The notes under the pieces are model-generated. The model did no database searches, had not been told where the DNA came from, and worked only from the letters and a program-made list of their open reading frames with translations. From contig NC_069002.1 of the NCBI RefSeq assembly GCF_001194135.2, positions 36,387,308 through 36,451,307 of the forward strand: a DNA stretch of 64,000 nt. The letters are read 5' to 3'. The DNA comes from Octopus bimaculoides. Its lineage: Eukaryota. Position numbers and translations under genes: made by a program. Each line of letters begins with the position of its first letter. The first letter of the stretch is position 1. Shown piece by piece: positions 1,606 through 46,500 of this stretch.

Positions 1606-1768
1606 TGACAGGATCAAGAGAGATGGTGCTACATGTTCCCTACGGCCTTGTGCACATGCTCCGATAGAGAACTGCTGCAAAGGTCACAATTGTATATGTT
1701 ATGTGGTGCCCGGGGGCACTCGTTGCGTGTGTGTTGCCCCTGAGGTTGATAACGCTATACTGCAAACT
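1606..1768 (+). CDS. KN1: mature-peptide exon of a secreted 8-Cys knottin (agatoxin-like) precursor; signal and propeptide exons not seen (before the window or in a gap)
   Basis: Acceptor ttctgtatttacag|t, phase 2. Translates (S)DRIKR-DGATCSLRPCAHAPIENCCKGHNCICYVVPGGTRCVCVAPEVDNAILQT, followed by donor-like act|gtaagc. Framework C-C-CC-CxC-CxC after a KR site. Confidence 0.85.
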
Positions 1769-3001
1769 GTAAGCGCTTTTCTCGTTTTCCTTGTAAATTT
1801 TAATCTTATTGACGTTCTGTTCCTGTGAATCTTGTGGATAAATTGCTTACGCCAGATTGTTTTTCATGCAAGTAGAAAATCAATGAGACCACGAAGACAA
1901 TGAATTTGATGTTTTAGGTAAAGAGCATTTAGAACTATAATGCACAAATTATCCAAAGGAGCCAGACAAACAGCAAGCACAAAAATACACTCAACTACAA
2001 GAACATCAACTAGTGCTGCTGCTGTTGCTGCATGCTACTACAACTACAACAACAAAATGAAAAACTACTACTACTACTACTTTTTCAATTTTGATACTAA
2101 CTCAGTTATTAAATCCTATAACAAAAGAGAATTATGAACGAACATCAAGAATAAAATGGTAAAAGATGAATTTGTCTAACTACCATGAATTAATACAACG
2201 ATTTTATACATAATATATTAATCCGTCAAATCTTAATGAAATCCCAATTAAATAAATTCATTAAGCAATGACGAATTCTCCGTGCTTTGTTCTTCGCTGT
2301 TGCGTTCGTTTTTAACTTGTGGTGATAGTTGTTAATATTTTACATTGCAGTGTCACATTATGGTTTCAATAAAAAAAACAGTCATGGCTGAGTTGGCAGT
2401 TGATGACAGACGATACGGTTGAATTACGACCACTTCCAACGCTCTTTTTACAGACATCAAATGTATAAGCTCCCGCAGTCCACACTGTCCATCCACTCTT
2501 CAGATGATTACACTTGATTTGCTGATGATTTTACAGTAATTTCTTGCAAATGGAGCGACCACACAGTCTTCCGCATTTTCTACATCTAGGTTGCAATACT
2601 GAAGAAAAATGTCAGATAATTACGTGTATATATATATATATATATATATAAATAATTTAGATTCAAGGTGAATATGGTACTTAAGTTTAGGCACCAGAAT
2701 TAACTATGGTATTATCCATACAATTTCAAAATAAGGTGATTAAAATCAAAATAAGCAACAAGGATATGCAAAGTTAATGCAGTACGATCGTTTCATGCGA
2801 CTCCATTTATTTAAGCAATGTGAACATTACATCAAATTAAGATATTGAAATTTAATAAAATTTCATTTCAACAGAAGGACATATTTTTAGAACTANNNNN
2901 NNNNNNNNNNNNNNNNNNNNNNNNNNNNNNNNNNNNNNNNNNNNNNNNNNNNNNNNNNNNNNNNNNNNNNNNNNNNNNNNNNNNNNNNNNNNNNNNNNNN
3001 N

Positions 3002-4850: not shown

Positions 4851-5969
4851 AGCGTTAGAAAGTTATTAAGCTGTACAGACACCACTTCTTTTCTCTTTTA
4901 CAAATACAAGAATGCGCNNNNNNNNNNNNNNNNNNNNNNNNNNNNNNNNNNNNNNNNNNNNNNNNNNNNNNNNNNNNNNNNNNNNNNNNNNNNNNNNNNN
5001 NNNNNNNNNNNNNNNNNNNNNNNNNNNNNNNNNNNNNNNNNNNNNNNNNNNNNNNNNNNNNNNNNNNNNNNNNNNNNNNNNNNNNNNNNNNNNNNNNNNN
5101 NNNNNNNNNNNNNNNNNNNNNNNNNNNNNNNNNNNNNNNNNNNNNNNNNNNNNNNNNNNNNNNNNNNNNNNNNNNNNNNNNNNNTGTGTGTGTGTGTGTG
5201 CATGAAATTATTTGGCATTTTTTCTACAATTTTGCAACTTCGGTCAAGAAAACGCGTGAGACTTCGTGGTCGCGAGACTTCGTGGTCGCGAGACTTCCAA
5301 GGATTTAATCATAAAACCAGATGCATCACGGGAAGGGGGCGTGACTGCTGCAACGTGTGTCGCTGGCTTTTCCTCGCGGAAACACCATCACGGTCACAAC
5401 CGAGGAATACTGCTGAGCACTCCATTTGTTTTGGGGTATGTTGCCCATTGCCCACAACCCTCCATCTCTTGCACTCGTTTCCTACACCCTTTTCTGCTTT
5501 TCTCTATTCTCCTTTCTTATCTATCTTTTTTCCTGTTTCTTTCTATTTAAATGTTATAAAATAGAACTTGGACAAAATTTGTTTTACAATAATATAATGT
5601 GACACTGCAGAAACAAGTAGTGCAGTGAAGAAGGAAGAACAGAGTAATTTTCATGGTTTCATAAATTTATTTATCTGAGATTTCATTAAAATTTGAGGGA
5701 TTAATAACATAAATATATTAGATATAGGAGGAGGTGTAGGATGAGGAGAAGTAGCAGCATCAGTGACAACAACAACATTTGTTGATGTTCTTGTAGTTGA
5801 GTGGATTTTTGCTGTTTCTCTGGCTCCTTTGGTTTGTTTGTTTCCGTGATCGCATCGATTTCCCCGTTGTATAAAAACAATCTGATGTATATAGTTTACT
5901 CACAGGATTCACAGGTGCAGAACGTTAATAAGATGGTAAATTTACAATAAAAATCAGAAAAGCAATTAC

Positions 5970-7373
5970 AGTTTGGACTATACCGTTAGTAGCCACATGG
6001 ATCCTATTTTGTGAACTACAATAGCATTTACGATTTTCACATTCACATATGTAACCTGCGCAACATGGACGTCGTAGCCTCGGTCTTGGACCGTTGCAAG
6101 GCCCTTTTGTACATCTACCACGTCTCTTAATCCTGTCACTGTAAATACAGAATATATTAGGAAATAAAAAATATTATTAAACTATGATTTCTCATTAAGG
6201 GAGAAGGCGCGGAATTTACAGGGAAAGGGATCAGGCTGTATTGGTGTTTATTTTAACGACGTGGATAAAACCAAAAGAATCTGACGGGACTTGAACTCAA
6301 AACATGCAGATCCGAAACAAATACCACAAGTCGTATATTTCTGTTCTTTTAACGATAACTAAGTATATAAATATAAATATATATCCAGAATTTCATAAGT
6401 AGAATTAGATAGTCACAGGGGAATTAATGGATAAATGTTATAAAGAGTTAGAGACGAGGTAACAAGCGGGATAGTTATGTTCTTCAGTTAATAATTTTAA
6501 CAAATATGCATGTATATTAATTAGATGAGTCTACTTTTTAATACCCCCGATACATTTCAATGTTGCACTTATTGATTGACTGCATTCGAATTATCGCCAC
6601 TATTTTAAAACTTGGTTCCTGATTCTCAGCACATTTTAATTGAGAATTATGTTTTTAATTAGGAAATCAAATCTATATTCTATGTGGTAAAATCTCTCTT
6701 TTTCGGGTCATTATGATTTGTCATATATACACCTCTTAAATGAGATATGTAAACAAGGTTTCCGAATTAACAAGCCAAACAATTTTCCATATTGAAAATA
6801 ATGTTCAAAACAGAAATCTTAACCTTTATATGATTTTCAATTTTAGTTATTTTGGTTTAATTGTATTTGTATCAGAAAAACGATCTTCTTGGCTCGTGGT
6901 TACGAAGTGAGCCCCTTAACCACACGACCATACCAGCACGCATATTTCAATAAATTGTTAATAAATTTTGTAGGCAAGATATAAAGAAATATTATTTAAT
7001 TTTTTACTTATGAAAATAATTTTCTCTTCGCTAAATCTCGCTTCATATCTTCCCCTTTCAGATTTTCTGTTATACAGAAACTACCATTTAGAAATAGTCT
7101 CAGAATTTGAATTTGCCAATACGAATAACATTTTTACTATACACTCAAGGCCTGAGACGTTGATGGCGGGTGCTACTCCCTTACATAGACCCTAGTTCTC
7201 AACTAGTAATTATTTTATCGACCCAGAAATGATGAAAGGTGCAGTCAACATCGGCAAAATTTCAACTCAAAACACAAAACCGGAAGTAGTGCCACTATGG
7301 GTATTTTATCCAGAGAGCTAATGATTCTGCCAGCTTACCGCCTGGCCAAAACTAAATTAAGCATATATATATA

Positions 7374-10250: not shown

Positions 10251-10400
10251 AGTTTCGACATCTTCGCCTTCGAAATAGTCACTTTGCGCAGCAATACACC
10301 AGTCTCAATGATCCTCCTGCTTTTGGAATCTGGCCTGGATGTTGTTTTCTGTAAGCGAGTCAAGGACCTTTATAAAGTAAAAGAAAATTATAATTAACAC

Positions 10401-10473
10401 TTTGTTCATCCGAAAAGGTTCATGAAATGAGTTCACAGAAAAGAATAAGACATTGATGCTTTTCATCAAGCAG
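10401..10473 (-). pseudogene. Degenerate duplicate of the KN2 signal-peptide exon
   Basis: cag|ctgcttgATG aaa agc atc aat gtc tta ttc ttt aligns with KN2 exon 8170-8107. It has a 2-nt insertion that destroys the hydrophobic core (MKSINVLFFSVNSFHEPFRMNK) and a weakened donor (gtgtta). No propeptide or mature exon lies between it and the KN2 upstream unit. Confidence 0.65.
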
Positions 10474-13175: not shown

Positions 13176-13769
13176 AAGAAGATATAATATCAAATAATGA
13201 CATTGACTAGTCATAATGTATATAAAGAAATAAACAGCACTGTAGTTGGTATGTCTTTAGGTGCTGCTAATGATTAATGTGTCTTAAATCAGTTTCTGTT
13301 CTTTTTTTTTGGAGGGGGGGGTGCCATTAACGGAGTCGAGCTGGCAGAATCGTTAGCACGCAGGGCAACGTTCTGAGTTCAAAAATTACGTTTTTCCATC
13401 GGAAATTATGGAGCAAAATGTTGCCCGAAAGTGCTATTTGTTTATTGATGCTGTTAGATTTATTATTATAATATTTGGTAATTTGTGTTAGTATTAATAC
13501 TTGTAGTAATATTAGCAAAAGTGATTTTAATAGCAGAAGCAGTAAATGAATTTACGTGTATTGATGTTCGTTGCGCGTTGAAAATAAAGAAGGTAGAAGA
13601 AAATACAAAGGAACCCTATTAAATATCAAAATATCAATTAACATTGTATATCTGTCTATCTAACTGTTTCTCTATCTATTTAATATATTTGTGCATTTGT
13701 GCGTGCGTGTGTACGCGCGTGTGCATATATGTATACATGGTTTAGTGGCTAGGCTCGTGTTCATTCACA

Positions 13770-14187: not shown

Positions 14188-17100
14188 CTCTCTCATTACA
14201 TCGTTTTCTCTAAACTAGAATGTATAATTTTCACGTTCATATTTGAATTTTTCGCGTTTCAATTTTTCTCTGTTTTTTACTCATTCCAAAAGTTGATGGA
14301 CATATAGCGGTACATAAAACCGAATCAGAAAATCTCTAGTGAGACTTTTTATTTTTTTGTTTATTTATGTATCCGAGAGGTCACTAGAATTCTACACTGA
14401 GTTTCAGCTCCTCAAATGTAGCATCAATATAATAATTGACCCCTGAGATTTAATAATTGAGATTCTTTAGAAAATTCAACTTATATAGGCATATGCACGG
14501 TATGCACTTCACGATCGAAGACTGGTGGGATTTGGTGGGTATTGGTTACCAAACTTAGTAGGTTAGAGGGACAATAAATGATGTGTATCAAGGCAATTTC
14601 AACTACTTTCGTAAATTACAAAATGTTCAGTCATATTTCGTGAACTCCACAGCTGATTTATGTCCCAATGCTTAATTCTAAATGGTTCATAGGTATTTGG
14701 CGTCACGCATGAACAGATCAAGCGAAACGATATTAACTTTAAAAGAAGAAAACCTTATATCTCACGAAGTCTAAAAACATCCTGAATTCGAAAGTGGGAA
14801 TCAGAAAATATTAAGTAGCTCATATAATGGAAGAAATGACCTACTTATCAACATTAACAATCAACCAGTTCAGAAATAATATTTTACTCTTTTATACATT
14901 TTAACCCAAAGGATTTGGCCATGCTGGAGCACCTCATTTTATATAATATCAAATAAGGATACTTCGTATATTCCACCATGCAAATTACAATCCTGTGTTT
15001 GTCATCCGAAGGACACCACGTCGTTTTTGAAACATATTTATCAATCAAAACACAAAGAAGGGACTCCAGATTTCCATGACTAATATTGGATGAGGGGTAA
15101 GCATTTTTCAGCTGATGGAACTTCTGTGAGTTGTATTTCATAAGTCGACTACATCAATCTCACTGCTCAACTGGTACTTATTTTATCGACCTCGAAAGAA
15201 TGAAAGGCAAAGTCGACTCCAGTGACATTTGAATCCAGAAGGCAATGTCGGAAGAAACGTCGCTGGGCATTTTGTCCGATGCAGTAACGATTCTGCCAAC
15301 TCGCTAATCGTTCTGTCAGTTCATGTAGAATATTAATATTGAATTATGTATTTCATTTTCATCAAATGTTTCTGACAGAAACAGCATAATTTATTACAAA
15401 TTTAATTGTGTAAAGACAAGAATAAAAATTATAATTACTATAGCAAGCTGTTTCATTTTTATTGTTATTGGTATCTTTTACATACTCCTACATATCCATG
15501 CCAATTAATGCAGCATTTCCTTTGAGAATCACTCTTCTTTTCTAAGCAAGGAGAAATATATCAGAATATATTTATATTTGCCAGTTAACGCAGCTGGCAA
15601 ATATAAAAGCAGCGCTCTATGTATAAACTTACACTTAATTTACCAAAACCCAATTTAGATAAATTTAGTCATCTATTCTAGAAAATTTTATAAACTAATA
15701 CAGCGAAAGCCAAGCTATATGTGTGTGGATGTGTGTGTGTGCGTGGTGTTTTTACGAATAAGTAAGTGCCATCACATTAGTTACGAAATGGGTGATCCTG
15801 ATATCAGAAGTACATGTAATTTGATTAATTGCAAAGTAATTAAACTAAATGTTTCAAACCAAATAAAAATGATTTCTTAAAAAGCAAATAAAAGTAAATA
15901 AACAGCACAAGTCTTTAAAACATAGTGCAAAGAGAGTGTCGATTGCATATTCCCCTTAATTAAATTTGTGACACGGTCTATAATTAATCAACGAATATTT
16001 TATTGATCTCTCACACTCTCTCTCTCTTTCTCTTTATCTCTCTCTTCCTCTCTCTCTCTTTCTCTTTATCTCTCTCTTCCTCTCTCTCTCTTTCCATTTC
16101 AATTTCCAAATGTACTTTGAGAAATATTGTTTTCTTTCTACAAGTATTGTGAAATGAGTTTCTGTGTTGATTGTATCTGTCTTTGAAAGTTATGCATGTA
16201 GTTCTGAAATAATATTTTTTTGGTATATCCTTGAAATACCGTTGTCCAGTAGATTTCGTTTTCAGGTAACTTATTCTTATAGTTTAGTGTGTTGATATGT
16301 GGCAGACTCATCTGATTTGAAAAATATTGGTAGTCAAGTCATGTAGCAAATTGCAGCTTAACTGTAATGACTAATTTCTTATGCAGGTAGATATAACTTC
16401 TGTACTGCTACTGTTGAATAGTTTGTGGTAACTATGATCGGTTCAGAATCGTCAGAGGAAAAGTGTAAGGAAGATTTTTGCAGCAGTTGTTCCTTCATTT
16501 TCATCGAAAAGTTGGTTGAGTTAAGTGACATCATATTTTTTCCTGCTTTATTCGGATGGTGGTTTATGTCACTTTTACTATGCATTTGATTTAACATTAC
16601 AACCGCTCGCTTATAAGGATTCGTTTTAGAAGAGTTTTATTGGTTGAATAATGGTTTGTTTATGAAATTGGGAAAAAAAATGCCACTCTATGTTACTGGT
16701 GAGATTCTTTATAATATTAGTGAAGATTCTGGATGGGTGCAGGGATAGGTATATGTGTGTGTGCGCGTGCGCGTGCGCGTGTGCGTGTGTAGTAAATGAA
16801 AGACGGAAGATGGAATGGAATATACGAGAATTTTTATTATTAATCACGACAATTGTTTTGACACATCTAGCATCAATCCCTCACAGGTGAGAAACTTAGC
16901 AACTGGTTCAGGAGCATCCGGTGGTGCCGATGTGTCTCGTCGGTTGATAAATAATACAACGCGTAAAAATAACAGTTCAGCAATGTATCATCTCATTTCG
17001 TAGAAAGAAAAGCAGCAAAACGAAGGAAATATTATTTATATAGAAAATCAAAAATAAAATCACAGATGCCAAAAAGAAACGAACACGCAATACAGCGAAA

Positions 17101-22407: not shown

Positions 22408-25249
<2,842 letters not shown>

Positions 25250-29340: not shown

Positions 29341-30249
29341 CTTTTTCACTTATCTTCAGCTTTATGTTAACATCCGCTGGGCAGCTGATTTCCACAATTG
29401 TACACAGTTTCTCTTCTCTATTTCAAATCATTACATCGTTTATTCCTTGACCAATTTTGCATACATGAAGCTGATAACATCATGAGGCATGGAAGACAAC
29501 TCAATGAACAGCATTCCTTGTCTGATAACCTAGAATACATGCCCAAAGAAGTTACCCGACTCTACTGCAATATATCATCAGATGAAAGGATGAGCGTATA
29601 TGAGCAGAAGATCATGCATGGATATGTTAGTAGAAAACTCCGATATGATAGTAACAATGATCATCAATGCTGTATGACTTGGGTGTAATTCAGAGACATT
29701 AACTTCTTCGAAATTCTTCTTTCTCTTCACATCAGATTTTCGTCCATCTATGTATGCATGTATGTATGTTTGTATTGGACATTGCTTGTGTCCTGTAAAA
29801 TGAATGTTTTCTCTATTTCACATAATGATATTGTTCATTGAACGAGAGTAATATATATATACGCATTTGCATATATAAATTACACAATGAGCCTTTATAT
29901 GCGAACATATGTACCACGATTGAACGCAAAAGATTTATGTCTTAACATTATAATTCAGACTTTATTTTATTAGTTTTATACGATGTTGAATAATCTTTTC
30001 TACTCTAGGCACAAGGCCCTAAATTTGGGGGGAGGGGCCAGTCAATCAGATCGATTCCAGTAAGCAACTGGTACATAATTTATCGACCACGAAAGGATGA
30101 AAGGCAAAGTTGACCTCAGCGGAATTTAAACCCAGAACGTAAAGACAGACGCCTTTACGATGCTGAATAATAGCCGGACACTTAGATCGGGCAGGTCCAT
30201 AATTTGTAAAAGAAATGCTAACAAACAAATACGTATACATATATAATTA

Positions 30250-32247
30250 TATGCAGTTATTGCGCTGCTCGAATCTTTACAATGGCAGTTCGTCCATAAA
30301 CCTCCACATACACAAACTTGACCTCTACAGCATAATTCAAGGGGACTATTACATGGCAATCTTTTGCATATGTTGTCCCTCTTATATCTGCTTCTTCTGT
30401 AAACAGAGAAAATAATTAGAAATGTTAGCAATCTAAAGACACCAGGTATGTTGTAACTGTACTATAGACACATATTTTATATCCGAAACCTCTAAACTGC
30501 TATTGTTCCCATGAAACGATTTTATAGTTACTTCGATTCTACTTGGATTGTGTTAACATTGTAGTGTGTTTACAATCCTGCTTCTGTCGCTGTCGCAACA
30601 GAAGCGAGACTTTCAAAAGACGAATGCTAATCATTAGGAGCATGCAACATCAACTATATAACATATGTGGTGCACCTTGTCAACCACCACTAAGTCCGGT
30701 CTGTTATGTTCTAGCATCTGATTTGTTTGGATTGGGAAATCCCAGAGGATCTTGCAAGTCTCTGACTGCCCCACTCTCTGCGATTCGCGCTCAAACCACG
30801 TCTTGCTTCTCTCCAGGCCAACATGGCAAAGAACGGCAGCAGCTTCCCAACATGTCGTGTATGTCAACAACAAAATGAAACCATTGATCATGTTGACTCC
30901 CTGTGCAGTCTTCTTATGCCTACTGAGTATCTCAACAGGCATGACAGAGCTGCACAATATATGCACTGGGTAATTTGCAAAAACCTGGACCTGCCCTATG
31001 ATATAAAAAAAAAACCTGATGTGAACACAAACCACCTCCAGTGATTGAAAAGGATCACATCGCACTCCTCTAGAACTTCATCATTCAAACTGACAGGAAG
31101 ACAGATGCAAATAGGTCAGACATAATATTGAAAGACTTCAGACAAAAGTCATGCCTCCTCATTGATATAACTGTCCCAATCGATATAAACGTATCTGTCA
31201 AAACCTACCAAAAACTGAGCAAATATAGAGATCTTGAAATAGAAATTTCTCTATCAGTGTGTATTGGCATATCTCAGAGTATGGTTGTTTTCCCATTTTC
31301 TGTGACCTTTTCTAGCGTGTACCTATACCATTATTATTATTATTGTTATTTATTCAAGTCACTGCCTGGAATTGAACTCGGAATCTTGGGGTTAGTAGCC
31401 CGCGCCCTTAACCATTACGATATATAGTCCATGGGAAGTCTATATAACTTGTGTCAGTTAACTAATAATGTTGTTGTTTTTTTATCTGTGGTTGGGGTTT
31501 TACAGCCTTATGGCCTCCTTTCAAAATCTGTTTGTCAGATAGATTACTTCGACATTTTATTCGTGTATTAATTTGATAAAAATAAATTTTAGATATATTC
31601 TCTGTAGAAAATACCTTTGTTTAACATTTAGACAAATATTTTTTCCCCTAATCCAGACAATATTTCAGATAGTTACTCTATTTTCTGATTTTATTTTTGT
31701 TACACAAAGCACGAGACACTCTTTACAAAATAAGCCTAACACAAATAAATCAGTTAACAAAAGCATTATAACAATTATTTCACTTTTACTGATGCCATTC
31801 TCAAACAATTGTCAATATATAATTCTTACCTTCCATCCAAACGGTCATAATCTGTTTCTGACTTGGCATCGGACATACTGCGATCTGAATATGATACACG
31901 AACACAAGAATAACACAAGAATAACACGGGCCTCATAAATATAGTATGGAAGATAGAAGAGCCATGAAAATTTGATGAGAATAAGCAATCTCTCATCCTT
32001 TGAAAACATAAAAAACAACGACTCTCCCCACGTCTCTCTCCTTTTCTCTCTCACTCCTTTCACCACTTCTAGAAAACATAAAAAACAACGACTCTTCCCT
32101 CATCCCCTCTCTCTCTCTTTCCTTTTCTCTCTCACTAGCTCTAGAATTACTATGAAGTGATGGTAGTGGGGAATATTTACCTTGCTTCTGCGACGAGGTG
32201 CTTGAAACGAGTATGCCAATGCAGAGAAGTGCAAGAGTCTTTTTCAT
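30250..32247 (-). CDS. KN4: 8-Cys knottin precursor (signal exon 32247-32181, propeptide exon 31884-31830, mature exon from 30396; 3' end uncertain)
   Basis: ag|ttgcgtgATG MKKTLALLCIGILVSSTSSQKQ g|gtaaat; ttcag|(D)RSMSDAKSETDYDRLDG ag|gtaaga; tttacag|(R)RSRYKR-DNICKRLPCNSPLELCCRGQVCVCGGLWTNCHCKDSSSAITAY. Confidence 0.88.
30560..30795 (-). mobile_element. R4/Dong-like REL endonuclease fragment
   Basis: CKILWDFPIQTNQMLEHNRPDLVVVDKVHHICYIVDVAC (PD..D motif). Confidence 0.75.
30800..31260 (+). mobile_element. R4/Dong-like CCHC zinc knuckle + REL endonuclease fragment
   Basis: CRVCQQQNETIDHVDSLC...EYLNRHD...MHWVIC and SCLLIDITVPIDINVSVKTYQKLSKYRDLEIEI. Confidence 0.8.
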
Positions 32248-34600: not shown

Positions 34601-34954
34601 ACAATTATAGAAAGTGAACACAACGTCATCCCAAAAAAGACCATGCCCCCGATTCCTGAGAATTCCCTATTGATTCAGCGTATATATATATCTACAATCA
34701 ACGGCATACTTCTCTAGGTGACTAAGCATCTGCATGATAGTCGTGACATGTCAAATGCTCCGGCAGCAAAAGTATGCTGCTAAACAAATAAAATCAGTAA
34801 GGAATAAAATGAAACTAAGCAAAACTTCTAAAATTTAACGTAAAAACATTCAGCCTTGTGACGTAAATTCCAAGAAGAGACGCTTTGTTTCTTTGTTAGA
34901 GTCTTGCTTCTTTAGTAGCTTTTATTATTGCCATTTTATATCAACAGGTGCATG

Positions 34955-36731
34955 ATGAAACATAATTTTATCCTCTGTTTGTACTTCTGTGTACTCATTC
35001 CATTCGTGTTCTCATATTTTCAAGGTAAGTACTCATTGTTCCTTATTACTTCATAGTGAATGGGGACAGAGTAAGTGGCAAAGAGATTATTTCATGGATT
35101 GGGAATGTTTTTTCTATCCTTGTGTCATCAAATTCCCTTCTCTTCTCTTGTTTCACGTGATTCTTCCTTTCAGCGCTAGTTTCTTTCCGTTTATCATCTC
35201 TTATCAACCCACCTTGAAGAATTGTAGCCGAATGAGTTGACCCCAGTGCTTCTTTTTAAGGCCTAGGAATTATTTCATGGGTCTCTTTTGAAGAACCTCT
35301 AAGTTACAAGGACGTCGTCGCACTTCCCAGCTACTGATCCTCTGCAAATATCTAAAGAGGAACATCCACCGGTCTTGTTGCCCGACTTGTAGAGGACAGT
35401 GAGCGCCTGACGACATTCTAAGGGCCAGGCGCCCAGTCTCGGCCTATCCTTTACCCAGGACCGCAGCTCCGTCAAGGAGACGAGCTGCGGAAAGGCGTGT
35501 CTCACAAACAGAGCCCACACACCTAGTAATCGCTGCAGGTGGCGCAACCTGAGTGCGTGTCTGCGCATTAAAATCTATGGCAAGCCAAAGCCGCCACGCA
35601 AAAGAAGTTGACAGCAGACCAATCGCCTGACCATTGGAACGAGTCCTTTCCACAAGAAAATAAACAGGATACGCTCCAGTCTAATCAAACAGTAACTGGG
35701 GCAAGGCACAACGGTCAGACGATAAATAATGACAGTTTCTCTCGGTTTCTGTCAACTAAATCTACTCACAAGGCTTTGGACTGTCCAATGTTATTGTAGA
35801 AGATACCTGCCAAAGGAGCGCCGTAGTGGCTCTAAACCCGAAACCGTTTAAGGGAAGCAAACTACACTACTCCTCCCCATCCCCAGTACGTTTACAAAAG
35901 ATGTGTGTGAGGGGTGAAGCTGCAAGACTAAATGGGTTTATTTTGACAAGCATGGTGGTATACTGGAAGACTGCACGTTTGATTTCTGTGAAATCAATCA
36001 TCCTATTTCCAGGAAGGAAAATATAAATTCCAGTCTTTACTGACCTCTTTTATTCTTGTACTTGTTTCAGTCATTTGACTGTGGCCATGCTGGAGCACCG
36101 CCTTTAGTCGAGAAAATCGACCCCAGGACTTATTCTTTGTAAGCCTAGTACTTATTCTATCGGCCTCTTTTTGCCGAACTGCTAAGTTACGGGGACGTAA
36201 ACACACCAGCATCGGTTGTCAAGCGATGTTGGATGGACAAACACAGGCACACATACACACACACACACACACATACACATATATATATACGACGGGCTTC
36301 TTTCAGTTTCCGTCTACCAAATCCACTCACAAGGCTTTGGTCGGCCCGAGGCTATAGTAGAAGACACTTGCNNNNNNNNNNCTACCAAATCCACTCACAA
36401 GGCTTTGGTCGGCCCGAGGCTATAGTAGAAGACACTTGCCCAAGGTGCCACGCAGTGGGACTGAACCCGGAACCACGTGGTTCGTAAGCAAGCTACTTCC
36501 CACACAGCCACTGCTACGCCTATCCTGTGAATTTTTCAAACGTAGTATAGGTATAATTTCACCGTCTACTATTTATTTAAATATCCAGTTACTATATTTG
36601 TGTAATCGATATGTTTTCTTATAAGAATTTAATCAACTGAAAACTGATTCATCGTAACGATTGACGTAATTTCCAGATCGATATATGCCTGAGGTTTTTT
36701 TAAAAAGAGGGCTTAAAGGTTTCGTAAAAAG
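34955..36731 (+). CDS. KN5: signal exon (34955-35024) and propeptide exon (36677-36731) of an 8-Cys knottin precursor, upstream of three tandem mature exons
   Basis: caacag|gtgcatgATG MKHNFILCLYFCVLIPFVFSYFQ g|gtaagt; ttccag|(D)RYMPEVFLKRGLKGFVK ag|gtaaga. The phase-2 end joins in frame to all three downstream exons and creates KR|S at the junction. Confidence 0.85.
36045..36510 (-). mobile_element. Near full-length microsatellite-containing tRNA-SINE in KN5 intron 1
   Basis: tRNA-like head (gtggctgtgtgggaagtagcttgcttacgaaccacgtggttccgggttcagtccc), body, (ca)n and tail. A ~50-bp segment is duplicated across the 10-N gap. Confidence 0.85.
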
Positions 36732-37515
36732 GTAAGAATTATATATTTTATCTTTTATCTTGTTTCAGTTATTAAATTGCGGTCATGCTGGGGCACTACC
36801 TTGAGGAATTTTGGCCGCACTTGACCTTTGTACTAATTTTCCATTTTTCAAAAGCCTGATACATATTTACTCGGTTTTTTTTTTTTTTTTTTTTTTTTNN
36901 NNNNNNNNNNNNNNNNNNNNNNNNNNNNNNNNNNNNNNNNNNNNNNNNNNNNNNNNNNNNNNNNNNNNNNNNNNNNNNNNNNNNNNNNNNNNNNNNNNNN
37001 NNNNNNNNNNNNNNNNNNNNNNNNNNNNNNNNNNNNNNNNNNNNNNNNNNNNNNNNNNNNNNNNNNNNNNNNNNNNNNNNNNNNNNNNNNNNNNNNNNNN
37101 NNNNNNNNNNNNNNNNNNNNNNNNNNNNNNNNNNNNNNNNNNNNNNNNNNNNNNNNNNNNNNNNNNNNNNNNNNNNNNNNNNNNNNNNNNNNNNNNNNNN
37201 NNNNNNNNNNNNNNNNNNNNNNNNNNNNNNNNNNNNNNNNNNNNNNNNNNNNNNNNNNNNNNNNNNNNNNNNNNNNNNNNNNNNNNNNNNNNNNNNNNNN
37301 NNNNNNNNNNNNNNNNNNNNNNNNNNNNNNNNNNNNNNNNNNNNNNNNNNNNNNNNNNNNNNNNNNNNNNNNNNNNNNNNNNNNNNNNNNNNNNNNNNNN
37401 NNNNNNNNNNNNNNNNNNNNNNNNNNNNNNNNNNNNNNNNNNNNNNNNNNNNNNNNNNNNNNNNNNNNNNNNNNNNNNNNNNNNNNNNNNNNNNNNNNNN
37501 NNNNNNNNNNNNNNN

Positions 37516-37816: not shown

Positions 37817-38357
37817 TGTACGTATGTATGTATGTACGTACGTACAGGCTTACTTTAATTTCTGACAACCAAATCCACTCTCAAGGCTGTGGTTGGCCCG
37901 AGGCTATAGTAGAATGCACTTCGAGACTGAACCTTGAACCATGTTGTCAGGAAACGAACTTCTTACTACACAGCCACGCCTGCTCCTATACTGATAACTG
38001 ATTCAGCTGCGCTATTATTATTAGTATTGTTATTATTAGACTCGTTAGCACACAGGACATATTATTAAACATAACTAGTCCTGGATCATTTTGATACCAC
38101 CTCGTACTATGTGGTGAGAATCTTTGGAATTTGAATCTCGAATAATTTTTGCTTAGTATCAGGTTGTTACTTCTTGCTAGTTCAGTAACACTTCTATGGC
38201 CTATACACTTCTGCTAACGTGCTGTAACATTTGACTGTATGTATCTACAAACATATTTATAGGAACAAAAATAATTTAATCAAGCACTGTATTAACACAA
38301 CGTAATTACGAAGTTCTTTCTTTTATATATCTTCTTTGCTTTTATCTACATTTCCAG

Positions 38358-38496
38358 AAGCATATGGCCTACATGCGGAGCATTTGCTGAGAAATGCCAA
38401 CATAAGCGGAGTAGGTTATATAATCCATGTTGTAGGCAATATGATTGTACATGTAGGATCGTCTGGAAGAAATGCCTGTGCATGTATCCTAAATAG
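38358..38496 (+). CDS. KN5a mature-peptide exon
   Basis: atttccag|a then SIWPTCGAFAEKCQHKRSRLYNPCCRQYDCTCRIVWKKCLCMYPK-stop (tag 38494-38496). 8 Cys intact. Confidence 0.88.
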
Positions 38497-39122
38497 TATG
38501 TCCATTGATTAAAGTATCTTCCATGAATGTCATGCTGTTTAAAATTGTTAACCTCATTATATGAGACAAAGGAAAATAAAAATACTTTTTATGCGAAATT
38601 GTTATTTGTTCAACGCTAACATGTCCAATATATATTTTACGTTGCTGGAAATTTAGAGCCAAGTGAAGCAGTTTTTTGGCTTCTTAGACTTCGTGTACAT
38701 TTTTGCAGTTATTATGTGACTACATGTAACGATAAACTATAGAAAAGCATCAAGAGATAACTTGGTTTTCTATTTATAACAAAAAAAAACAAAATCAAGC
38801 GTCACAGGGCTCCGTTATTTGCTTCATAATGAACTCCTTCGCATTTGTTAAGAAGTTGGGTATTAATTATGAAATCCTTTGCTTTCATTAAAAATAGTTT
38901 TGTCAATAAATCTATTTTAAAAAACTACGTTTTTCAGTTTCAAGTACATTTTCAAACCCCAAAACAAATTCTCACCCACCCAAACACACACACACTGTAA
39001 AAGTTCGGTGAAAATTCATATTTATAGGCACAAAAATAATTTAATCAAGCACTGTATTAACACAACGTAATTGCGAAGGTCTTTCTTTTATATATCTTCT
39101 TTGCTTTTATCTACATTTCTAG

Positions 39123-39285
39123 AAGCATATGGCCTACATGCGGGGGATTTGGTGAGAGATGCAACCCTGTGCGGAGAAGATTATATGCTCCATGTTGTAG
39201 GCAATATGATTGTGCATGTAGGATCGCCTGGGAGAGATGCATGTGCATGTATCCTTCTTTTAGTAATAGTATGTCCATTAATTAA
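39123..39285 (+). CDS. KN5b mature-peptide exon
   Basis: atttctag|a then SIWPTCGGFGERCNPVRRRLYAPCCRQYDCACRIAWERCMCMYPSFSNSMSIN-stop. 8 Cys intact. Confidence 0.88.
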
Positions 39286-39886
39286 AGTATCTTCCATGAA
39301 TGTCATGCTGTTTAAAATTGGTAACCTCATTATATGAGACAAAGGAAAATAAAAATACTTTTTATGTGAAATTTTTATTTGTTCAACGCTGACATGTCCA
39401 ATATATATTTTACGTTGCTGGAAATTTAGAGCCAAGTGAAGCAGTTTTATGGCTTCTTAGACTTCGTGTACATTTTTGCAGTTATTATGTGACTACATGT
39501 AACGATAAACTATAGAAAAGCATCAAGAGATAACTTGGTTTTCTATTTATAACAAAAAAAACAAAATCAAGCGTCACAGGGCTCCGTTATTTGCTTCATA
39601 ATGAACTCCTTCGCATTTGTTAAGAAGTTGGGTATTAATTATGAAATCCTTTGCTTTCATTTAAAATAGTTCTGTCAATAAATCTATTTTAAAAAACTAC
39701 ACGTTTTTCAGTTTCAGGTACATTTTCAAACCCCAAAACAAATTCTCACCCACCCAAACACACACACACTGTAAATGTTCGGTGAAAATTCAGTCATACT
39801 GAGTTTTCAAAATAATTGAAGAGAGAGAAAGAAAAAAAAAGGGGGTGGTTATAATTTCTGTCTCGGTGCGTGTTATTCATTTTTTC

Positions 39887-39949
39887 AATTTCAGTCTCTG
39901 TGCACTGGTCTCTTCACCGCGAAGAGACCAGTGCACAGAGACTGAAATT
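39887..39949. repeat. Perfect 29-bp inverted repeat with 5-nt loop
   Basis: aatttcagtctctgtgcactggtctcttc-accgc-gaagagaccagtgcacagagactgaaatt. Confidence 0.95.
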
Positions 39950-39950
39950 A

Positions 39951-40068
39951 GCCTATACACTTCTATGGCCTATACACTTCTATGGCCTATACACTTCTAT
40001 GGCCTATACACTTCTATGGCCTATACACTTCTATGGCCTATACACTTCTATGGCCTATACACTTCTGC
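39951..40068 (+). repeat. 17-bp minisatellite (cctatacacttctatgg), ~7 units
   Basis: Identical head-to-tail units with no spacers. About 1.5 units occur at the paralogous site 38189-38212. Confidence 0.95.
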
Positions 40069-40211
40069 TGACGTGCTGTAACATTTGAATGTATGTATCT
40101 ACAAACATATTTATAGGAACAAAAATAATTTAATCAAGCACTGCATTTACACAACGTAATTGCGAAGTTCTTTCTTTTATATATCTCCTTTGCTATTATC
40201 TACATTTCCAG

Positions 40212-40368
40212 AAGCACAAGGTCTAAATGCAGAGGATTTGGTGAGAGATGCAATCCTATGCGGAGAAGATTATCTGCTCCATGTTGTAAGGAATATGATT
40301 GTATATGTAGGAACGCCTGGCAGAGATGCATGTGCGTGAATTCTACTTTGAGTAAAAGTGACACAGCG
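40212..40368 (+). CDS. KN5c mature-peptide exon (3' end uncertain; read-through stop at 40437)
   Basis: atttccag|a then STRSKCRGFGERCNPMRRRLSAPCCKEYDCICRNAWQRCMCVNSTLSKSDTA. 8 Cys intact. Confidence 0.85.
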
Positions 40369-40719
40369 GTTACATACTTACATAATTATATATTTATGTA
40401 TCAGTGTATTTCTTTATTTTCCGCTTTGACCCTGTAATACAGACATCTCTGGTCATAACTATTGTTGTCATTATTATTATTATTATTATTATTGAGGGAG
40501 AGAGCCGTGCATGCCATCAAAGTGGCATTGGGGTAAAATATACGAAGCCCATTATACCCATCATGACTACCCGTCTGTACAGGAATACATTAGTAAATAA
40601 ACAGCAGGTCAAAGGAATGGCACAAAAATATCTTTATGGCAAAGCATCGTACAAATATTTGTGCATGAACATTCTTTGGATATTGATTTGTAGAAAATGT
40701 ATTCTGTGCAGGTGGCACG

Positions 40720-40935
40720 TAAAATACACCATTTGAGCGTGGCCGTCGCCAGTACCTCTTGACTACACTCTCGGAGTGGTTGGCGTTAGGAAGGGCATCC
40801 AAATGCAGAAACTCTGCCAAATCAGGTTGGAGCCTGGTGTCGCCTCCTGGTCCACCAGTCCTCAGTCAAATCGTCCAACTCATGCTAGCTTGGAAAGCAG
40901 ACGTTAAACGACGACGATGATGATGATGATGACTC
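40720..40935 (-). mobile_element. RTE-type 3' tail element with (cat)n end
   Basis: gagtggttggcgttaggaagggcatcca...tcagtcaaatcgtccaac...gacgttaaacgacgatgatgatg. Further copies at 46320-46500(-) and 50915-51160(+). Confidence 0.8.
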
Positions 40936-42029
40936 TAAAAGTTCCATCTTTGAGTGTCATGCAATTTATATTGGATAATATCGTTAAATGACAATAGAAA
41001 ATAAACGTAGGTATACTCTGAGCGTAATACTGTGTAAAGTTACATCAAGAATTTAATCATGTTCAATATATAATCGCACAAGACTCATAGAATATTCAAA
41101 GAGAAGATTCAAAACAGGAAAGAATAGTCAGAAAATATTGTGCGTATTACAGTGTAAAATAAATTGATATTGAAGCTAAAGATGTTCCACGGAAATAAAT
41201 ATAAGAATATAAGAGATTTCGGGATCGATACACTAAGTACCAGTTGAACAATGGAGTTCATGTAACCAACTTAGCTCCTTCCCCGAAATTGCTGGCCTTG
41301 TGCCAAAATTTGAAACCAATATTTTACATCACTCTTGTACGAAGTTATATCCGTCGTGTGCCAAGGGAGATCATTCTTAACCAACACTGCCATGAGTTGT
41401 TTCTTGTTCAGAAAGGGAGTTATTTCAAGAACGACAAGTGACGGTAGGCTTTCTGAACTTTAGTATGTCGCCAAAGTTGCTTCCCTTATATACACTGTCT
41501 TTTTTTTTTTTAAGAGTAGCGCGAAGCTAGCAAGAAGGCGTTTATATAGGTTACGTCTGTTACATTATATTAGGCAGATAGTGAGATAAAGAAACCTAAA
41601 AACCTAAAATCTTCTTAAATAATGAGTAAAAGACCTTATGTCAAATAAAGGAATATATAAGAAAATAAACCAGATATCGTTATCAGAAATACATGCATAG
41701 GAGTTTATATCGATTACTATATCAGTCGAGAGATTATCATAAAATAATCCCGGTAAATTCCAGAACGTAAATGTCACAAAGAAACTATTATAATAAACGC
41801 CTTACAATGATTGAAAAATATTCAGTGAAATACATGACTAAATCCAGGAAGCTTATACAACACAGAAGTTGTCACCACTAGGACTTGCACATATTATATA
41901 AGGCGCATTTCATGTAATAACACGTAAAAAATATATGCAAAAAACTGCGTATACGAAACCAAGGTACACAAAACCGTGCTCGGATGCGAAATGAAATCAC
42001 GAAATAACGAATGTAAGACTAAAAATAAT

Positions 42030-44709: not shown

Positions 44710-45455
44710 GTGTTGTTGTCATCTTTGAGCTACCACCATGCATCGTAGACAACTTTAAACACTTGCATTTATTCCATGTTGTACTACATACGCACTCATG
44801 ATATTTACAGCATGAATCTTCATTCGGCGGCAAAGCGGGGTTACAATACTTTGAACAAATAGGCAGCCTTCTCTTAGTTCTGACTCTGGAAATAGCAACA
44901 ATAGAAAGGAAGTTGTATAAAAAAACAATTTAGAGATTCGATTGGATAAATAAAGTTATCGACAAAATGACCTAGGTGACCATAAAAATGTCTTACGCGC
45001 ACACATATTGAAATATTTCAGTTTGTCAGCAGTAGTAAAAAAAAAAAAAGAGTGTACCCAATATTGAATTCTTTTTTTTTTTATGTCAACAGTTTCAGGC
45101 CAGTGCGACTGTCAGGCAAGATCTATTTTCTTTCGTAAATCCGTCTGGTTTTCTACACTTCATATTGATTTCATTTTGTTGTCTATGTCCTTCTTAATAT
45201 TGACCGATTTGTATTTTTTTTATTGAAGCGTTTGCGTTGTGCTACTTTATAGAATGCAGTTGGGCCTTAAAGACAATTTGAAAGCTCGCTACACAATAAA
45301 GTTTTGCGTTCAAATGGAGGAAAACGCTGCAGAACTTATGAAATGCTCCAAACTGTTTATGGATCAATGAATATCAGCTAAGCATCTGTTTTGTGGCATC
45401 TAGGGTTACTTTGTTTAGGAATTTTTCTTTTCGAACAATTTAATTTGTTGTGATG

Positions 45456-45872: not shown

Positions 45873-46319
45873 CACGCACCTGTTAATATAAAATATAAAA
45901 TAAGAATAGGTGTTAGAGACATACAGAGAAGGTGATTTCTAAGAAGGAAAGAAACTTCAAAGGAAACTTAAATGAGAGAAGCAAACTTAGAAAAGTTGCT
46001 GTTGCAGAAAGTAACTTTGAAGTAGCGGTCAGAACAGTTTAAACCAGTAAATGTCATCGTGTCTCTTCCTGCTTCCCAGTACAAAACGTGGTGGTAGGGA
46101 AATGTCGTTAGCTCATAATTTATTCAGATGAGACCAAATATCTAGAAACGTTAGAGGACAAAGGTCAATCTAGGACACGCACTCACACACAAACAGCTAG
46201 ATAGATAGACAGGCAGACAGGCAGGCAGACAGACAGATAGATATCAATTATATAGGAATAGATAGAGACACAAAAATGGAAAAATAGGTGTACAAATGAA
46301 TTATTACAACACTGAACTC

Positions 46320-46500
46320 TCTCTGAGTGGTTGGCGTTAGGAAGGGCATCCAGTTGTAGAAACTCTGCCAAATCAGATTGGAGCCTGGTGTAGCCATCTG
46401 GTTTCACCAGTCCTCAGTCAAATCGTCCAACCCATGCTAGAATGGAAAGCAGACGTTAAACGACAAGGATGATGATGACGATGATGAACATGTTTTTGCA
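46320..46500 (-). mobile_element. RTE-type 3' tail element
   Basis: Same family as 40720-40935. Confidence 0.8.

Follow-up and report, generated by a model that had tools for sequence, protein, structure and literature searches.

The CCWamides and agatoxin-like peptides (ALPs) of protostomes, spider U8-agatoxin among them, are characterised by eight cysteines, an aromatic residue between Cys6 and Cys7 and an amidated aromatic C-terminus, and their precursors are encoded by three exons with introns in phases 1 and 2, the second of which splits the codon of a basic cleavage site (Thiel et al. 2021, PMC8557429). So far, no receptor has been reported for this scaffold (PMC8557429, PMC13311285). 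In the present study, we analysed a stretch of 64,000 nucleotides (hereafter the window) located at ~36.4 Mb on chromosome CM046622.1 of Octopus bimaculoides (GCA_001194135.2), where KN5a, KN5b and KN5c are predicted to be three copies of the third, mature-peptide exon of a single unannotated three-exon gene, KN5. The exon of KN5a has diverged from that of KN5b far more than their duplicated flanks have; the excess consists mostly of amino acid replacements, falls on KN5a and leaves the cysteine scaffold in place.

Accelerated evolution in the style of toxins is a known pattern. Positive selection in conotoxins was reportedly described by Duda and Palumbi in 1999, and accelerated evolution of exons over introns and untranslated regions (UTRs) in the phospholipase A2 (PLA2) and three-finger toxin genes of snake venoms is said to have been established by Nakashima, Ohno and colleagues in the 1990s. 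Conotoxin genes with different mature peptides show 98-99% intron identity (PMC3862624). As in the conotoxin superfamilies, the octopus paralogues keep their introns and pre/pro regions, while the Cys-framed mature region in the last exon diverges with its cysteines preserved. As in the snake-venom genes, coding sequence is more diverged than introns and UTRs, and replacements exceed synonymous changes. The differences are nevertheless plain: conotoxins form another peptide family in another animal class and are expressed in the venom gland, whereas the octopus locus is known from sequence alone, and what was duplicated in it is one exon of a gene, the rest of which stayed single. The snake toxins are encoded by vertebrate multi-exon genes that duplicate whole and whose toxin function has been demonstrated.

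Divergence of the KN5 exon relative to its flanks

The units carrying KN5a, KN5b and KN5c were aligned over positions 38150-39030, 38990-39830 and 40000-40700 of the window, respectively, and differences were tallied by region. Unit A (38254-39018, forward strand; 765 bp) is made up of 104 nt of intronic sequence, the exon of KN5a with its poly(A) region, and ~420 nt further downstream, and is followed by its head-to-tail copy, unit B (39019-39792, forward strand). The junction between the two is seamless and free of Ns, with a 2-nt microhomology (CA), and both ends of the array run on into unique sequence. The start of the exon was corrected: the acceptor AG occupies 38356-38357, which places the exon from 38358 and the codon frame from 38359 onwards.

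Over the 44 codons compared (38359-38490 in KN5a, 39124-39255 in KN5b), the two copies differ at 18 nucleotides (13.6%), none of which lies outside 38379-38476. They affect 15 of the 44 codons, 13 by replacement and two synonymously (GGA/GGG at 38379 and AGG/AGA at 38415), and all eight cysteine codons are the same in both copies, third positions included. An earlier, sequence-only reading of this DNA had arrived by hand at these same counts of nucleotide differences, replacement and synonymous codons and preserved cysteines over 44 codons, and its figures were exact. Upstream, the 102 nt of intron common to both units (38256-38357) carry four differences; downstream (38497-39018), 10 substitutions were counted in 521 nt, plus one 1-bp and one 2-bp indel. 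For the greater part of that downstream sequence (38521-39018), the same reading had given about nine substitutions and one 2-bp indel, both of which we recovered, but it overlooked a 1-bp indel in a run of A. Taken together, KN5a and KN5b differ at 18 of 124 exon positions (14.5%) and at 14 of 623 flanking positions (2.2%), so that the coding sequence is ~7 times more diverged (Fisher p=1.8e-7), and the earlier estimate of ~13% for the exon against ~2% for the flanks stands. Furthermore, an 8-nt indel, missing from that reading, lies right after codon 44; KN5a thereby ends in ...MYPK* and KN5b in ...MYPSFSNSMSIN*.

The third copy shows a similar picture with respect to KN5a only. The exons of KN5a and KN5c differ by 20%, compared with 4.1% in the 170 nt of upstream intron that they have in common (7/170; p=1.6e-5), while between KN5b and KN5c the values of 12% for the exon and 6.9% for the flank do not differ significantly (p=0.26). 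Within the exon, the differences between KN5a and KN5b concentrate in two blocks on the forward strand. The first one (38379-38423), spanning the loops Cys1-Cys2 and Cys2-Cys3, accounts for 13 of the 18, and KN5a has the derived state at 10 of these; the second (38462-38476), which takes in the Cys6-Cys7 hairpin together with the residue separating Cys7 from Cys8, accounts for four, with KN5a derived at three. In the remaining exon stretches (38358-38378, 38424-38461 and 38477-38490) the two copies are as similar as their flanks.

The direction of change was resolved with KN5c as an outgroup. At 13 of the 18 differing sites KN5c agrees with KN5b, which makes the KN5a state the derived one; at three it agrees with KN5a, and at two all three copies differ. 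Tajima's relative-rate test for KN5a versus KN5b gave p=0.012, and the 8-nt indel after codon 44 is a deletion in KN5a. KN5b has therefore stayed close to the ancestral exon while KN5a has evolved fast, an asymmetry that was absent from both the title and the reasoning of the sequence-only reading. The changes derived in KN5a cluster in inter-cysteine loops, and its branch has accumulated 13 changes in 124 nt, as compared with ~1.4 expected from the flanks. It should be noted that KN5a is the copy nearest to exon 2, and hence its acceptor is the first to be reached by the spliceosome; this position would fit selection acting on the expressed copy.

Probable positive selection and competing explanations

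Pairwise Nei-Gojobori estimates for KN5a and KN5b rested on two synonymous differences in 23.2 sites and 16 nonsynonymous ones in 99.8, with a ratio of nonsynonymous to synonymous rates (dN/dS, omega) of 1.97; the ratio was 6.3 for KN5a-KN5c (p=0.03) and 1.6 for KN5b-KN5c (p=0.44). Codon-only maximum likelihood (ML) analysis of the three copies returned an omega of 3.4 (likelihood-ratio test (LRT) 4.7, p=0.03), and a joint ML model, with MG94xHKY codons and HKY flanks on one tree, an omega of 6.8 (LRT 40, p=2.6e-10). The joint model is the more powerful one because the flanks share the codon tree and the neutral rate is drawn from 693 non-coding sites in addition to the synonymous ones. In branch tests, omega=1 was rejected both on the KN5a branch (p=5.6e-8, estimate ~20) and on the remaining branches (p=0.003, estimate ~3.3). 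Over the same history all 24 Cys codons of the three copies have stayed intact, for which p=0.002 under 33 random hits.

Synonymous divergence between KN5a and KN5b is near flank level, with two differences observed against 0.5 expected (p=0.10-0.11). Since synonymous sites are not significantly raised, the excess sits in replacements, and simple hypermutation is disfavoured. Elsewhere in the family, a control pair, the exon at 25076 and LOC128250510, has a Cys-domain ratio of nonsynonymous to synonymous proportions (pN/pS) of 0.49, which indicates that the exon is not inherently hypermutable and that acceleration is episodic. Inherent hypermutability of the exon was thus considered and found unsupported on both counts; its CpG content is also low (three in the exon). 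Other relatives follow the pattern of conserved surroundings and a divergent domain. In the trio formed by the genes with exons at 1634(+) and 6018(-) and LOC128250513, introns are 12-20%, the Cys domain 43-53% and the tail 12-28% diverged, with the start of the propeptide conserved; LOC128250537 and LOC128250515 are ~77% identical over signal and propeptide, and their mature domains can barely be aligned.

Positive (diversifying) selection on KN5a is the explanation that we consider best and, with restrained confidence, probable on the evidence of the aligned copies. A segment of 765 bp, with 104 nt of intron, the exon and the poly(A) site, would have been duplicated recently, as the ~2.2% divergence of its flanks suggests. 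KN5a would then have gained ~13 substitutions, 12 of them changing an amino acid, together with the 8-nt deletion that shortened its C-terminus. These changes would have fallen almost wholly in the inter-cysteine loops, with Cys codons, reading frame, acceptor and poly(A) signal retained. The probable cause would be diversifying selection on these loops, as exposed parts of a secreted peptide, with KN5a as the copy mainly spliced in; as a target, an ion channel or receptor of prey, of a predator or of the octopus itself would all fit.

Several points weigh against this reading. The sequence-only reading had already proposed positive selection, and its proposal is sustained in that replacements run far above the neutral rate while the cysteines are held (omega of 6.8 and 3.4), but the pairwise ratio of 1.97 between KN5a and KN5b is not significant alone (p=0.30). 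The strong tests assume one genealogy and one mutation rate for exon and flanks, and the sample amounts to 41-44 codons in three sequences. Seven of the 12 replacements in KN5a are conservative (G>A twice, R>K twice, N>Q, A>V and M>L). Moreover, the differences are blocky, 13 of the 18 falling in one 45-nt window (p=0.015-0.02), and sites derived in KN5a are spatially segregated from those at which KN5c stands apart from the other two (runs test p=0.004), a pattern that recombination fits too. This mosaic could equally reflect different loops selected on different branches or short imported tracts. Finally, no transcript, protein record or orthologue of KN5 was found in the databases searched; two word-indexed searches and an exhaustive profile search of 1.84 billion representatives, from which orthologues for dN/dS estimation were sought, returned paralogues from O. 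bimaculoides only.

Among the alternatives, the one that survives best, albeit as an unlikely one, is that one or more short tracts of the KN5a exon were overwritten in a single step through ectopic gene conversion or template switching, the donor being an unsampled KN5-like paralogue or a divergent allele. Such an event would agree with the crowding of 13 differences into 45 nt, with four more in 15 nt and the 8-nt indel 15 nt further on, as well as with the mosaic site patterns; besides, the same chromosome carries another cluster of the family at a distance of 7 Mb, and there are assembly gaps nearby (36899-37515). However, neither the window nor three loci of that second cluster (L002-L004) yielded a donor of the KN5a-specific blocks, nor was any KN5-like protein found among the 1.84 billion representatives. 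Conversion of KN5b by KN5c is likewise disfavoured, given that the blocks contain five KN5b-KN5c differences in 60 nt where 1.35 would be expected of a tract that postdates the duplication (p=0.012). Two or three separate and very short tracts would be required, because the 38 nt between the blocks are the same in KN5a and KN5b yet show four differences from KN5c. Furthermore, only a KN5-type exon whose own loops are hypervariable could have acted as donor, so that the acceleration would be moved to another copy and the conclusion at the level of the family would stand.

It is improbable that the duplicates are old and that concerted evolution, by unequal crossing-over or conversion, erased the differences in the flanks and in part of the exon, the loops having escaped by chance or by selection. 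Tandem arrays are prone to homogenisation, and the three exon stretches that are as similar as the flanks would suit it. On the other hand, synonymous divergence is low in all three pairs (1-2 differences in ~23 sites each), and Cys-codon usage is the same in all three copies; the flank differences are evenly spread, their longest clean stretch of 213 nt being unremarkable (p~0.13); and KN5c, which lies outside the tandem unit, shows the same disparity between intron and exon in relation to KN5a. If the loops were protected by selection, this would again amount to diversifying selection.

Still less credit can be given to an assembly artefact, in which two haplotypes of one single-copy exon were placed in tandem. 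The duplication is known from a single assembly, a gap-rich short-read one with 11 runs of N per 64 kb (the locus retrieved through LOC128250537 matches the window base for base, gaps included), and a flank divergence of ~2% could be allelic; against this stand the seamless N-free junction with its clean 2-nt microhomology, the ends of the array in unique sequence, and the separate third copy, KN5c, which demonstrates that the exon does duplicate. As alleles, moreover, a 14% divergence of the exon would be even more remarkable. The claim of the sequence-only reading that the copies are not assembly duplicates is accordingly reasonable in view of the clean junction, but not proven with one assembly. 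Lastly, neutral decay of one or both copies as redundant or unexpressed pseudo-exons is hardly believable: annotation is lacking, no transcript was found in the databases searched, exons 1-2 are missing from the copies KN5b and KN5c, KN5b has changed (3-5 times on its branch) at about the flank rate and those in KN5a lean to A/T as the mutation bias of the genome predicts, but drift cannot outpace the neutral rate, which KN5a exceeds and by which decay is already contradicted for this copy, and no Cys codon, frame or stop has been damaged in any copy, acceptors and poly(A) signals being intact as well.

The KN5 gene and the surrounding knottin cluster

Exon 1 of the predicted KN5 gene (34952-35024, forward strand) was recognised by tblastn and blastn homology to the signal exons of LOC128250536, LOC128250537 and the genes with knottin exons at 44759(-) and 25076(+). 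It encodes the putative signal peptide MMKHNFILCLYFCVLIPFVFSYFQ and the first base of the next codon, and is followed by the donor GTAAG of a phase 1 intron. Direct splicing of exon 1 to KN5a was rejected, as exon 1 ends in phase 1 and KN5a needs phase 2; owing to this mismatch the intron was searched and exon 2 found (36677-36731, forward strand; 55 nt), which would encode the propeptide DRYMPEVFLKRGLKGFVK and ends in phase 2 with the AG of a split Arg codon. The donor GTAAGAATTATATA is also conserved at exon 2 of two paralogues, with 19 of 19 nt matching the donor region of LOC128250537. The coding part of KN5a (38358-38496, forward strand) starts with the A that completes the Arg of the KR site and continues with the predicted mature peptide SIWPTCGAFAEKCQHKRSRLYNPCCRQYDCTCRIVWKKCLCMYPK up to a TAG stop; its poly(A) signal AATAAA (38575-38580, forward strand) lies inside a 3' element (38511-38580) common to KN5c and other family members. 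Once spliced, exon 1, exon 2 and KN5a form a complete open reading frame for a precursor of 88 residues, MMKHNFILCLYFCVLIPFVFSYFQ-DRYMPEVFLKRGLKGFVKR-SIWPTC…MYPK. The second intron splits the Arg of the KR site as AG/A, and the junctions read ...CAA G/gtaag, ...AAA AG/gtaag and A AGC, resulting in ...FVK-R/SIWPTC.

The second copy of exon 3, KN5b (39123-39285, forward strand), has the acceptor TAG instead of CAG, encodes the peptide SIWPTCGGFGERCNPVRRRLYAPCCRQYDCACRIAWERCMCMYPSFSNSMSIN, ends with TAA and is followed by AATAAA at 39348. The third one, KN5c (40212-40437, forward strand), retains the hydrophobic C-terminal tail of the family (…DTAVTYLHNYIFMYQCISLFSALTL*). Each has a YAG acceptor and an AATAAA ~80-560 nt past its stop. 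KN5b and KN5c consist of exon 3 only; lacking an exon 1 and an exon 2 themselves, they would depend for expression on being spliced to those they share with KN5a. None of the searches described above, neither the two word-indexed ones nor the exhaustive profile search, retrieved a protein matching KN5, and the gene is therefore regarded as unannotated. A further copy hidden in the gap at 36899-37515 is unlikely, the sequence after the gap being unlike the 3' flank of the unit.

Some other features of the array should be added. In KN5c, relative to KN5a and KN5b, some 570 nt (40438-40937) separate the Cys domain from the shared poly(A) element; among them are a run of (ATT)n and an element that recurs at 46316-46484 with 90-93% identity, and the difference is due either to a deletion in KN5a/b or to insertions in KN5c. 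The residues after the KR site are SIWPT in KN5a and KN5b (38363-38377 in KN5a) and STRSK in KN5c (40217-40231), so that all five changes are replacements and none is synonymous. If the split Arg is included, the sequence of KN5c becomes R-S-T-R, which may be an additional furin-type site, and the mature N-terminus may differ between the copies. The duplicated block is bordered on its far side, in the interval separating KN5b from KN5c, by a perfect 29-nt inverted repeat with a 5-nt spacer (39887-39949), which could be a hairpin linked to rearrangement or the end of a transposon. The 17-nt unit GCCTATACACTTCTATG is present in 6.8 perfect repeats upstream of KN5c (39951-40066) and in ~1.5 at the homologous site upstream of KN5a (38191-38215).

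A six-frame scan of the window revealed eight exons with the framework C-C-CC-CxC-CxC, which belong to six genes: 1634-1732(+), 6018-6113(-), 25076-25183(+), 30279-30368(-), 38374-40335(+), the last of these being the KN5 array, and 44759-44857(-). Protein records exist for just two of these six genes, LOC128250536 and LOC128250537; the exons at 1634, 25076 and 44759, like those of KN5, appear to lie in unannotated genes. The second cluster of the family, at 29.13-29.25 Mb of CM046622.1, includes LOC128250510, LOC128250513 and LOC128250515, and besides these at least two further called genes, of 119 and 131 aa. Each of its members can be matched to one gene of the window, a correspondence suggestive of segmental duplication of the cluster in its entirety; no counterpart of KN5 was seen in the three loci of the second cluster.

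In most members of the family, the last Cys is followed by a tail of hydrophobic character (e.g. …NGIVQTVIAFLIFIVNLPSY). Tails were located at 5928-6020(-), 1733-1830(+), 40336-40437(+) and 30129-30278(-) of the window, and at 14808-14900 of the second-cluster locus L002. The last 51 nt, stop included, of LOC128250536 and LOC128250513 differ at two positions, one synonymous and one TAA>TGA, compared with 20% in introns (p=0.006). Such conservation suggests that the tail is translated and constrained, possibly as a membrane anchor, a GPI (glycosylphosphatidylinositol) signal or a sorting signal. The tail has been lost in KN5a and KN5b, and canonical CCWamides are without it as well. In addition, two fragments resembling signal exons were noticed, one at 10396-10472(-) (CLMKSINVLFF…) with an in-frame stop and the other at 13274-13309(+) (LMCLKSVSVLFF) with no ATG; both look like relics of further family members.

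Relation to CCWamides and implications

All eight knottin exons of the window share the framework C-C-CC-CxC-CxC column-for-column with 13 CCWamides, and six of the eight, KN5a, KN5b and KN5c among them (CRIVWKKC, CRIAWERC and CRNAWQRC), have a Trp between Cys6 and Cys7. The predicted KN5 precursor is also similar in being short and made of three exons, the first encoding the signal and the last the mature peptide, and in having introns in phases 1 and 2, intron 2 lying between bases 2 and 3 of the basic cleavage-site codon; LOC128250537 has the same three-exon layout. A comparison of the eight octopus domains with the 13 CCWamides in hhalign yielded a probability of 93.8% (E=1.7e-7, 41 columns), for profiles that are short and Cys-rich. 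Unlike the CCWamides, however, the peptides of the cluster lack an aromatic-Gly-(K/R) end: KN5a terminates in CMYPK* and KN5b in CMYPSFSNSMSIN*, while KN5c and other cluster members end in a hydrophobic tail of 25-50 residues. The canonical CCWamide of the octopus is a separate protein, A0A0L8HXQ3, ending in ...CKCNLWMQNCRCVNKLWGG (…CRCVNKLWGG), the mature peptide of which is identical in O. sinensis. The cluster in the window thus represents a paralogous, lineage-specific and divergent expansion, and not the neuropeptide itself. The profile search found relatives of the family in O. bimaculoides only, and a literature search brought up nothing specific on octopus or cephalopod knottins or on CCWamide expansions in cephalopods.

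The cysteine framework is also common to the spider inhibitor cystine knot (ICK) toxins of the omega-agatoxin IV/Toxin_9 type, with omega-agatoxin IVA weakly matching the profile of the family (E=0.008). Pfam scores remained below the gathering cut-offs, with 13.2-17.0 bits for Toxin_9 (cut-off 21.3) and 11.9 for Toxin_7 (cut-off 27). An AlphaFold (AF2) model, with a predicted local distance difference test (pLDDT) score of 74, has a beta-hairpin at residues 29-33/38-42. In a Foldseek search of the PDB, the top three and most of the matches were spider ICK toxins with template modelling (TM) scores of 0.6-0.7 and weak E-values (best 0.2).

Given a scaffold of this type, a basic charge, a precursor of the secretory kind and evolution resembling that of toxins, the most likely kind of product would be a ligand for an ion channel or receptor. 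The arms-race function that the sequence-only reading took to be supported would be a conjecture for a family related to neuropeptides (CCWamide/ALP). A more detailed scenario, which we put forward as a doubtful one, would have the three KN5 exons serve as alternative terminal exons of one gene, each with its own acceptor and poly(A) site behind one promoter and signal peptide, and thereby diversify the knottin repertoire; the cluster would then be a cephalopod-specific recruitment of the CCWamide scaffold to a toxin-like or defence role, parallel to the recruitment of a neuropeptide as a toxin from which spider U8-agatoxin arose, with some members tethered by their tails. Among the components of cephalopod venoms, enzymes, tachykinins and large proteins are the best known. 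The literature search returned no knottin-type peptide family described from cephalopod venoms, and no report linking this family to venom.

What appears new here is an undescribed octopus expansion of CCWamide/agatoxin-like peptides. It is also unusual that the duplicated unit is a single terminal exon within one gene. O. bimaculoides possesses a clustered and mostly unannotated set of CCWamide/agatoxin-like knottins, the mature domains of which evolve like the toxins of cone snails and snakes. If expressed, these peptides would be candidate new ligands of ion channels or receptors, and would constitute a second, independent case of a hypervariable CCWamide scaffold after spider U8-agatoxin. 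The duplication of the exon alone may furthermore offer a simple test system for whether toxin-like isoforms can arise as alternative last exons before becoming separate genes.

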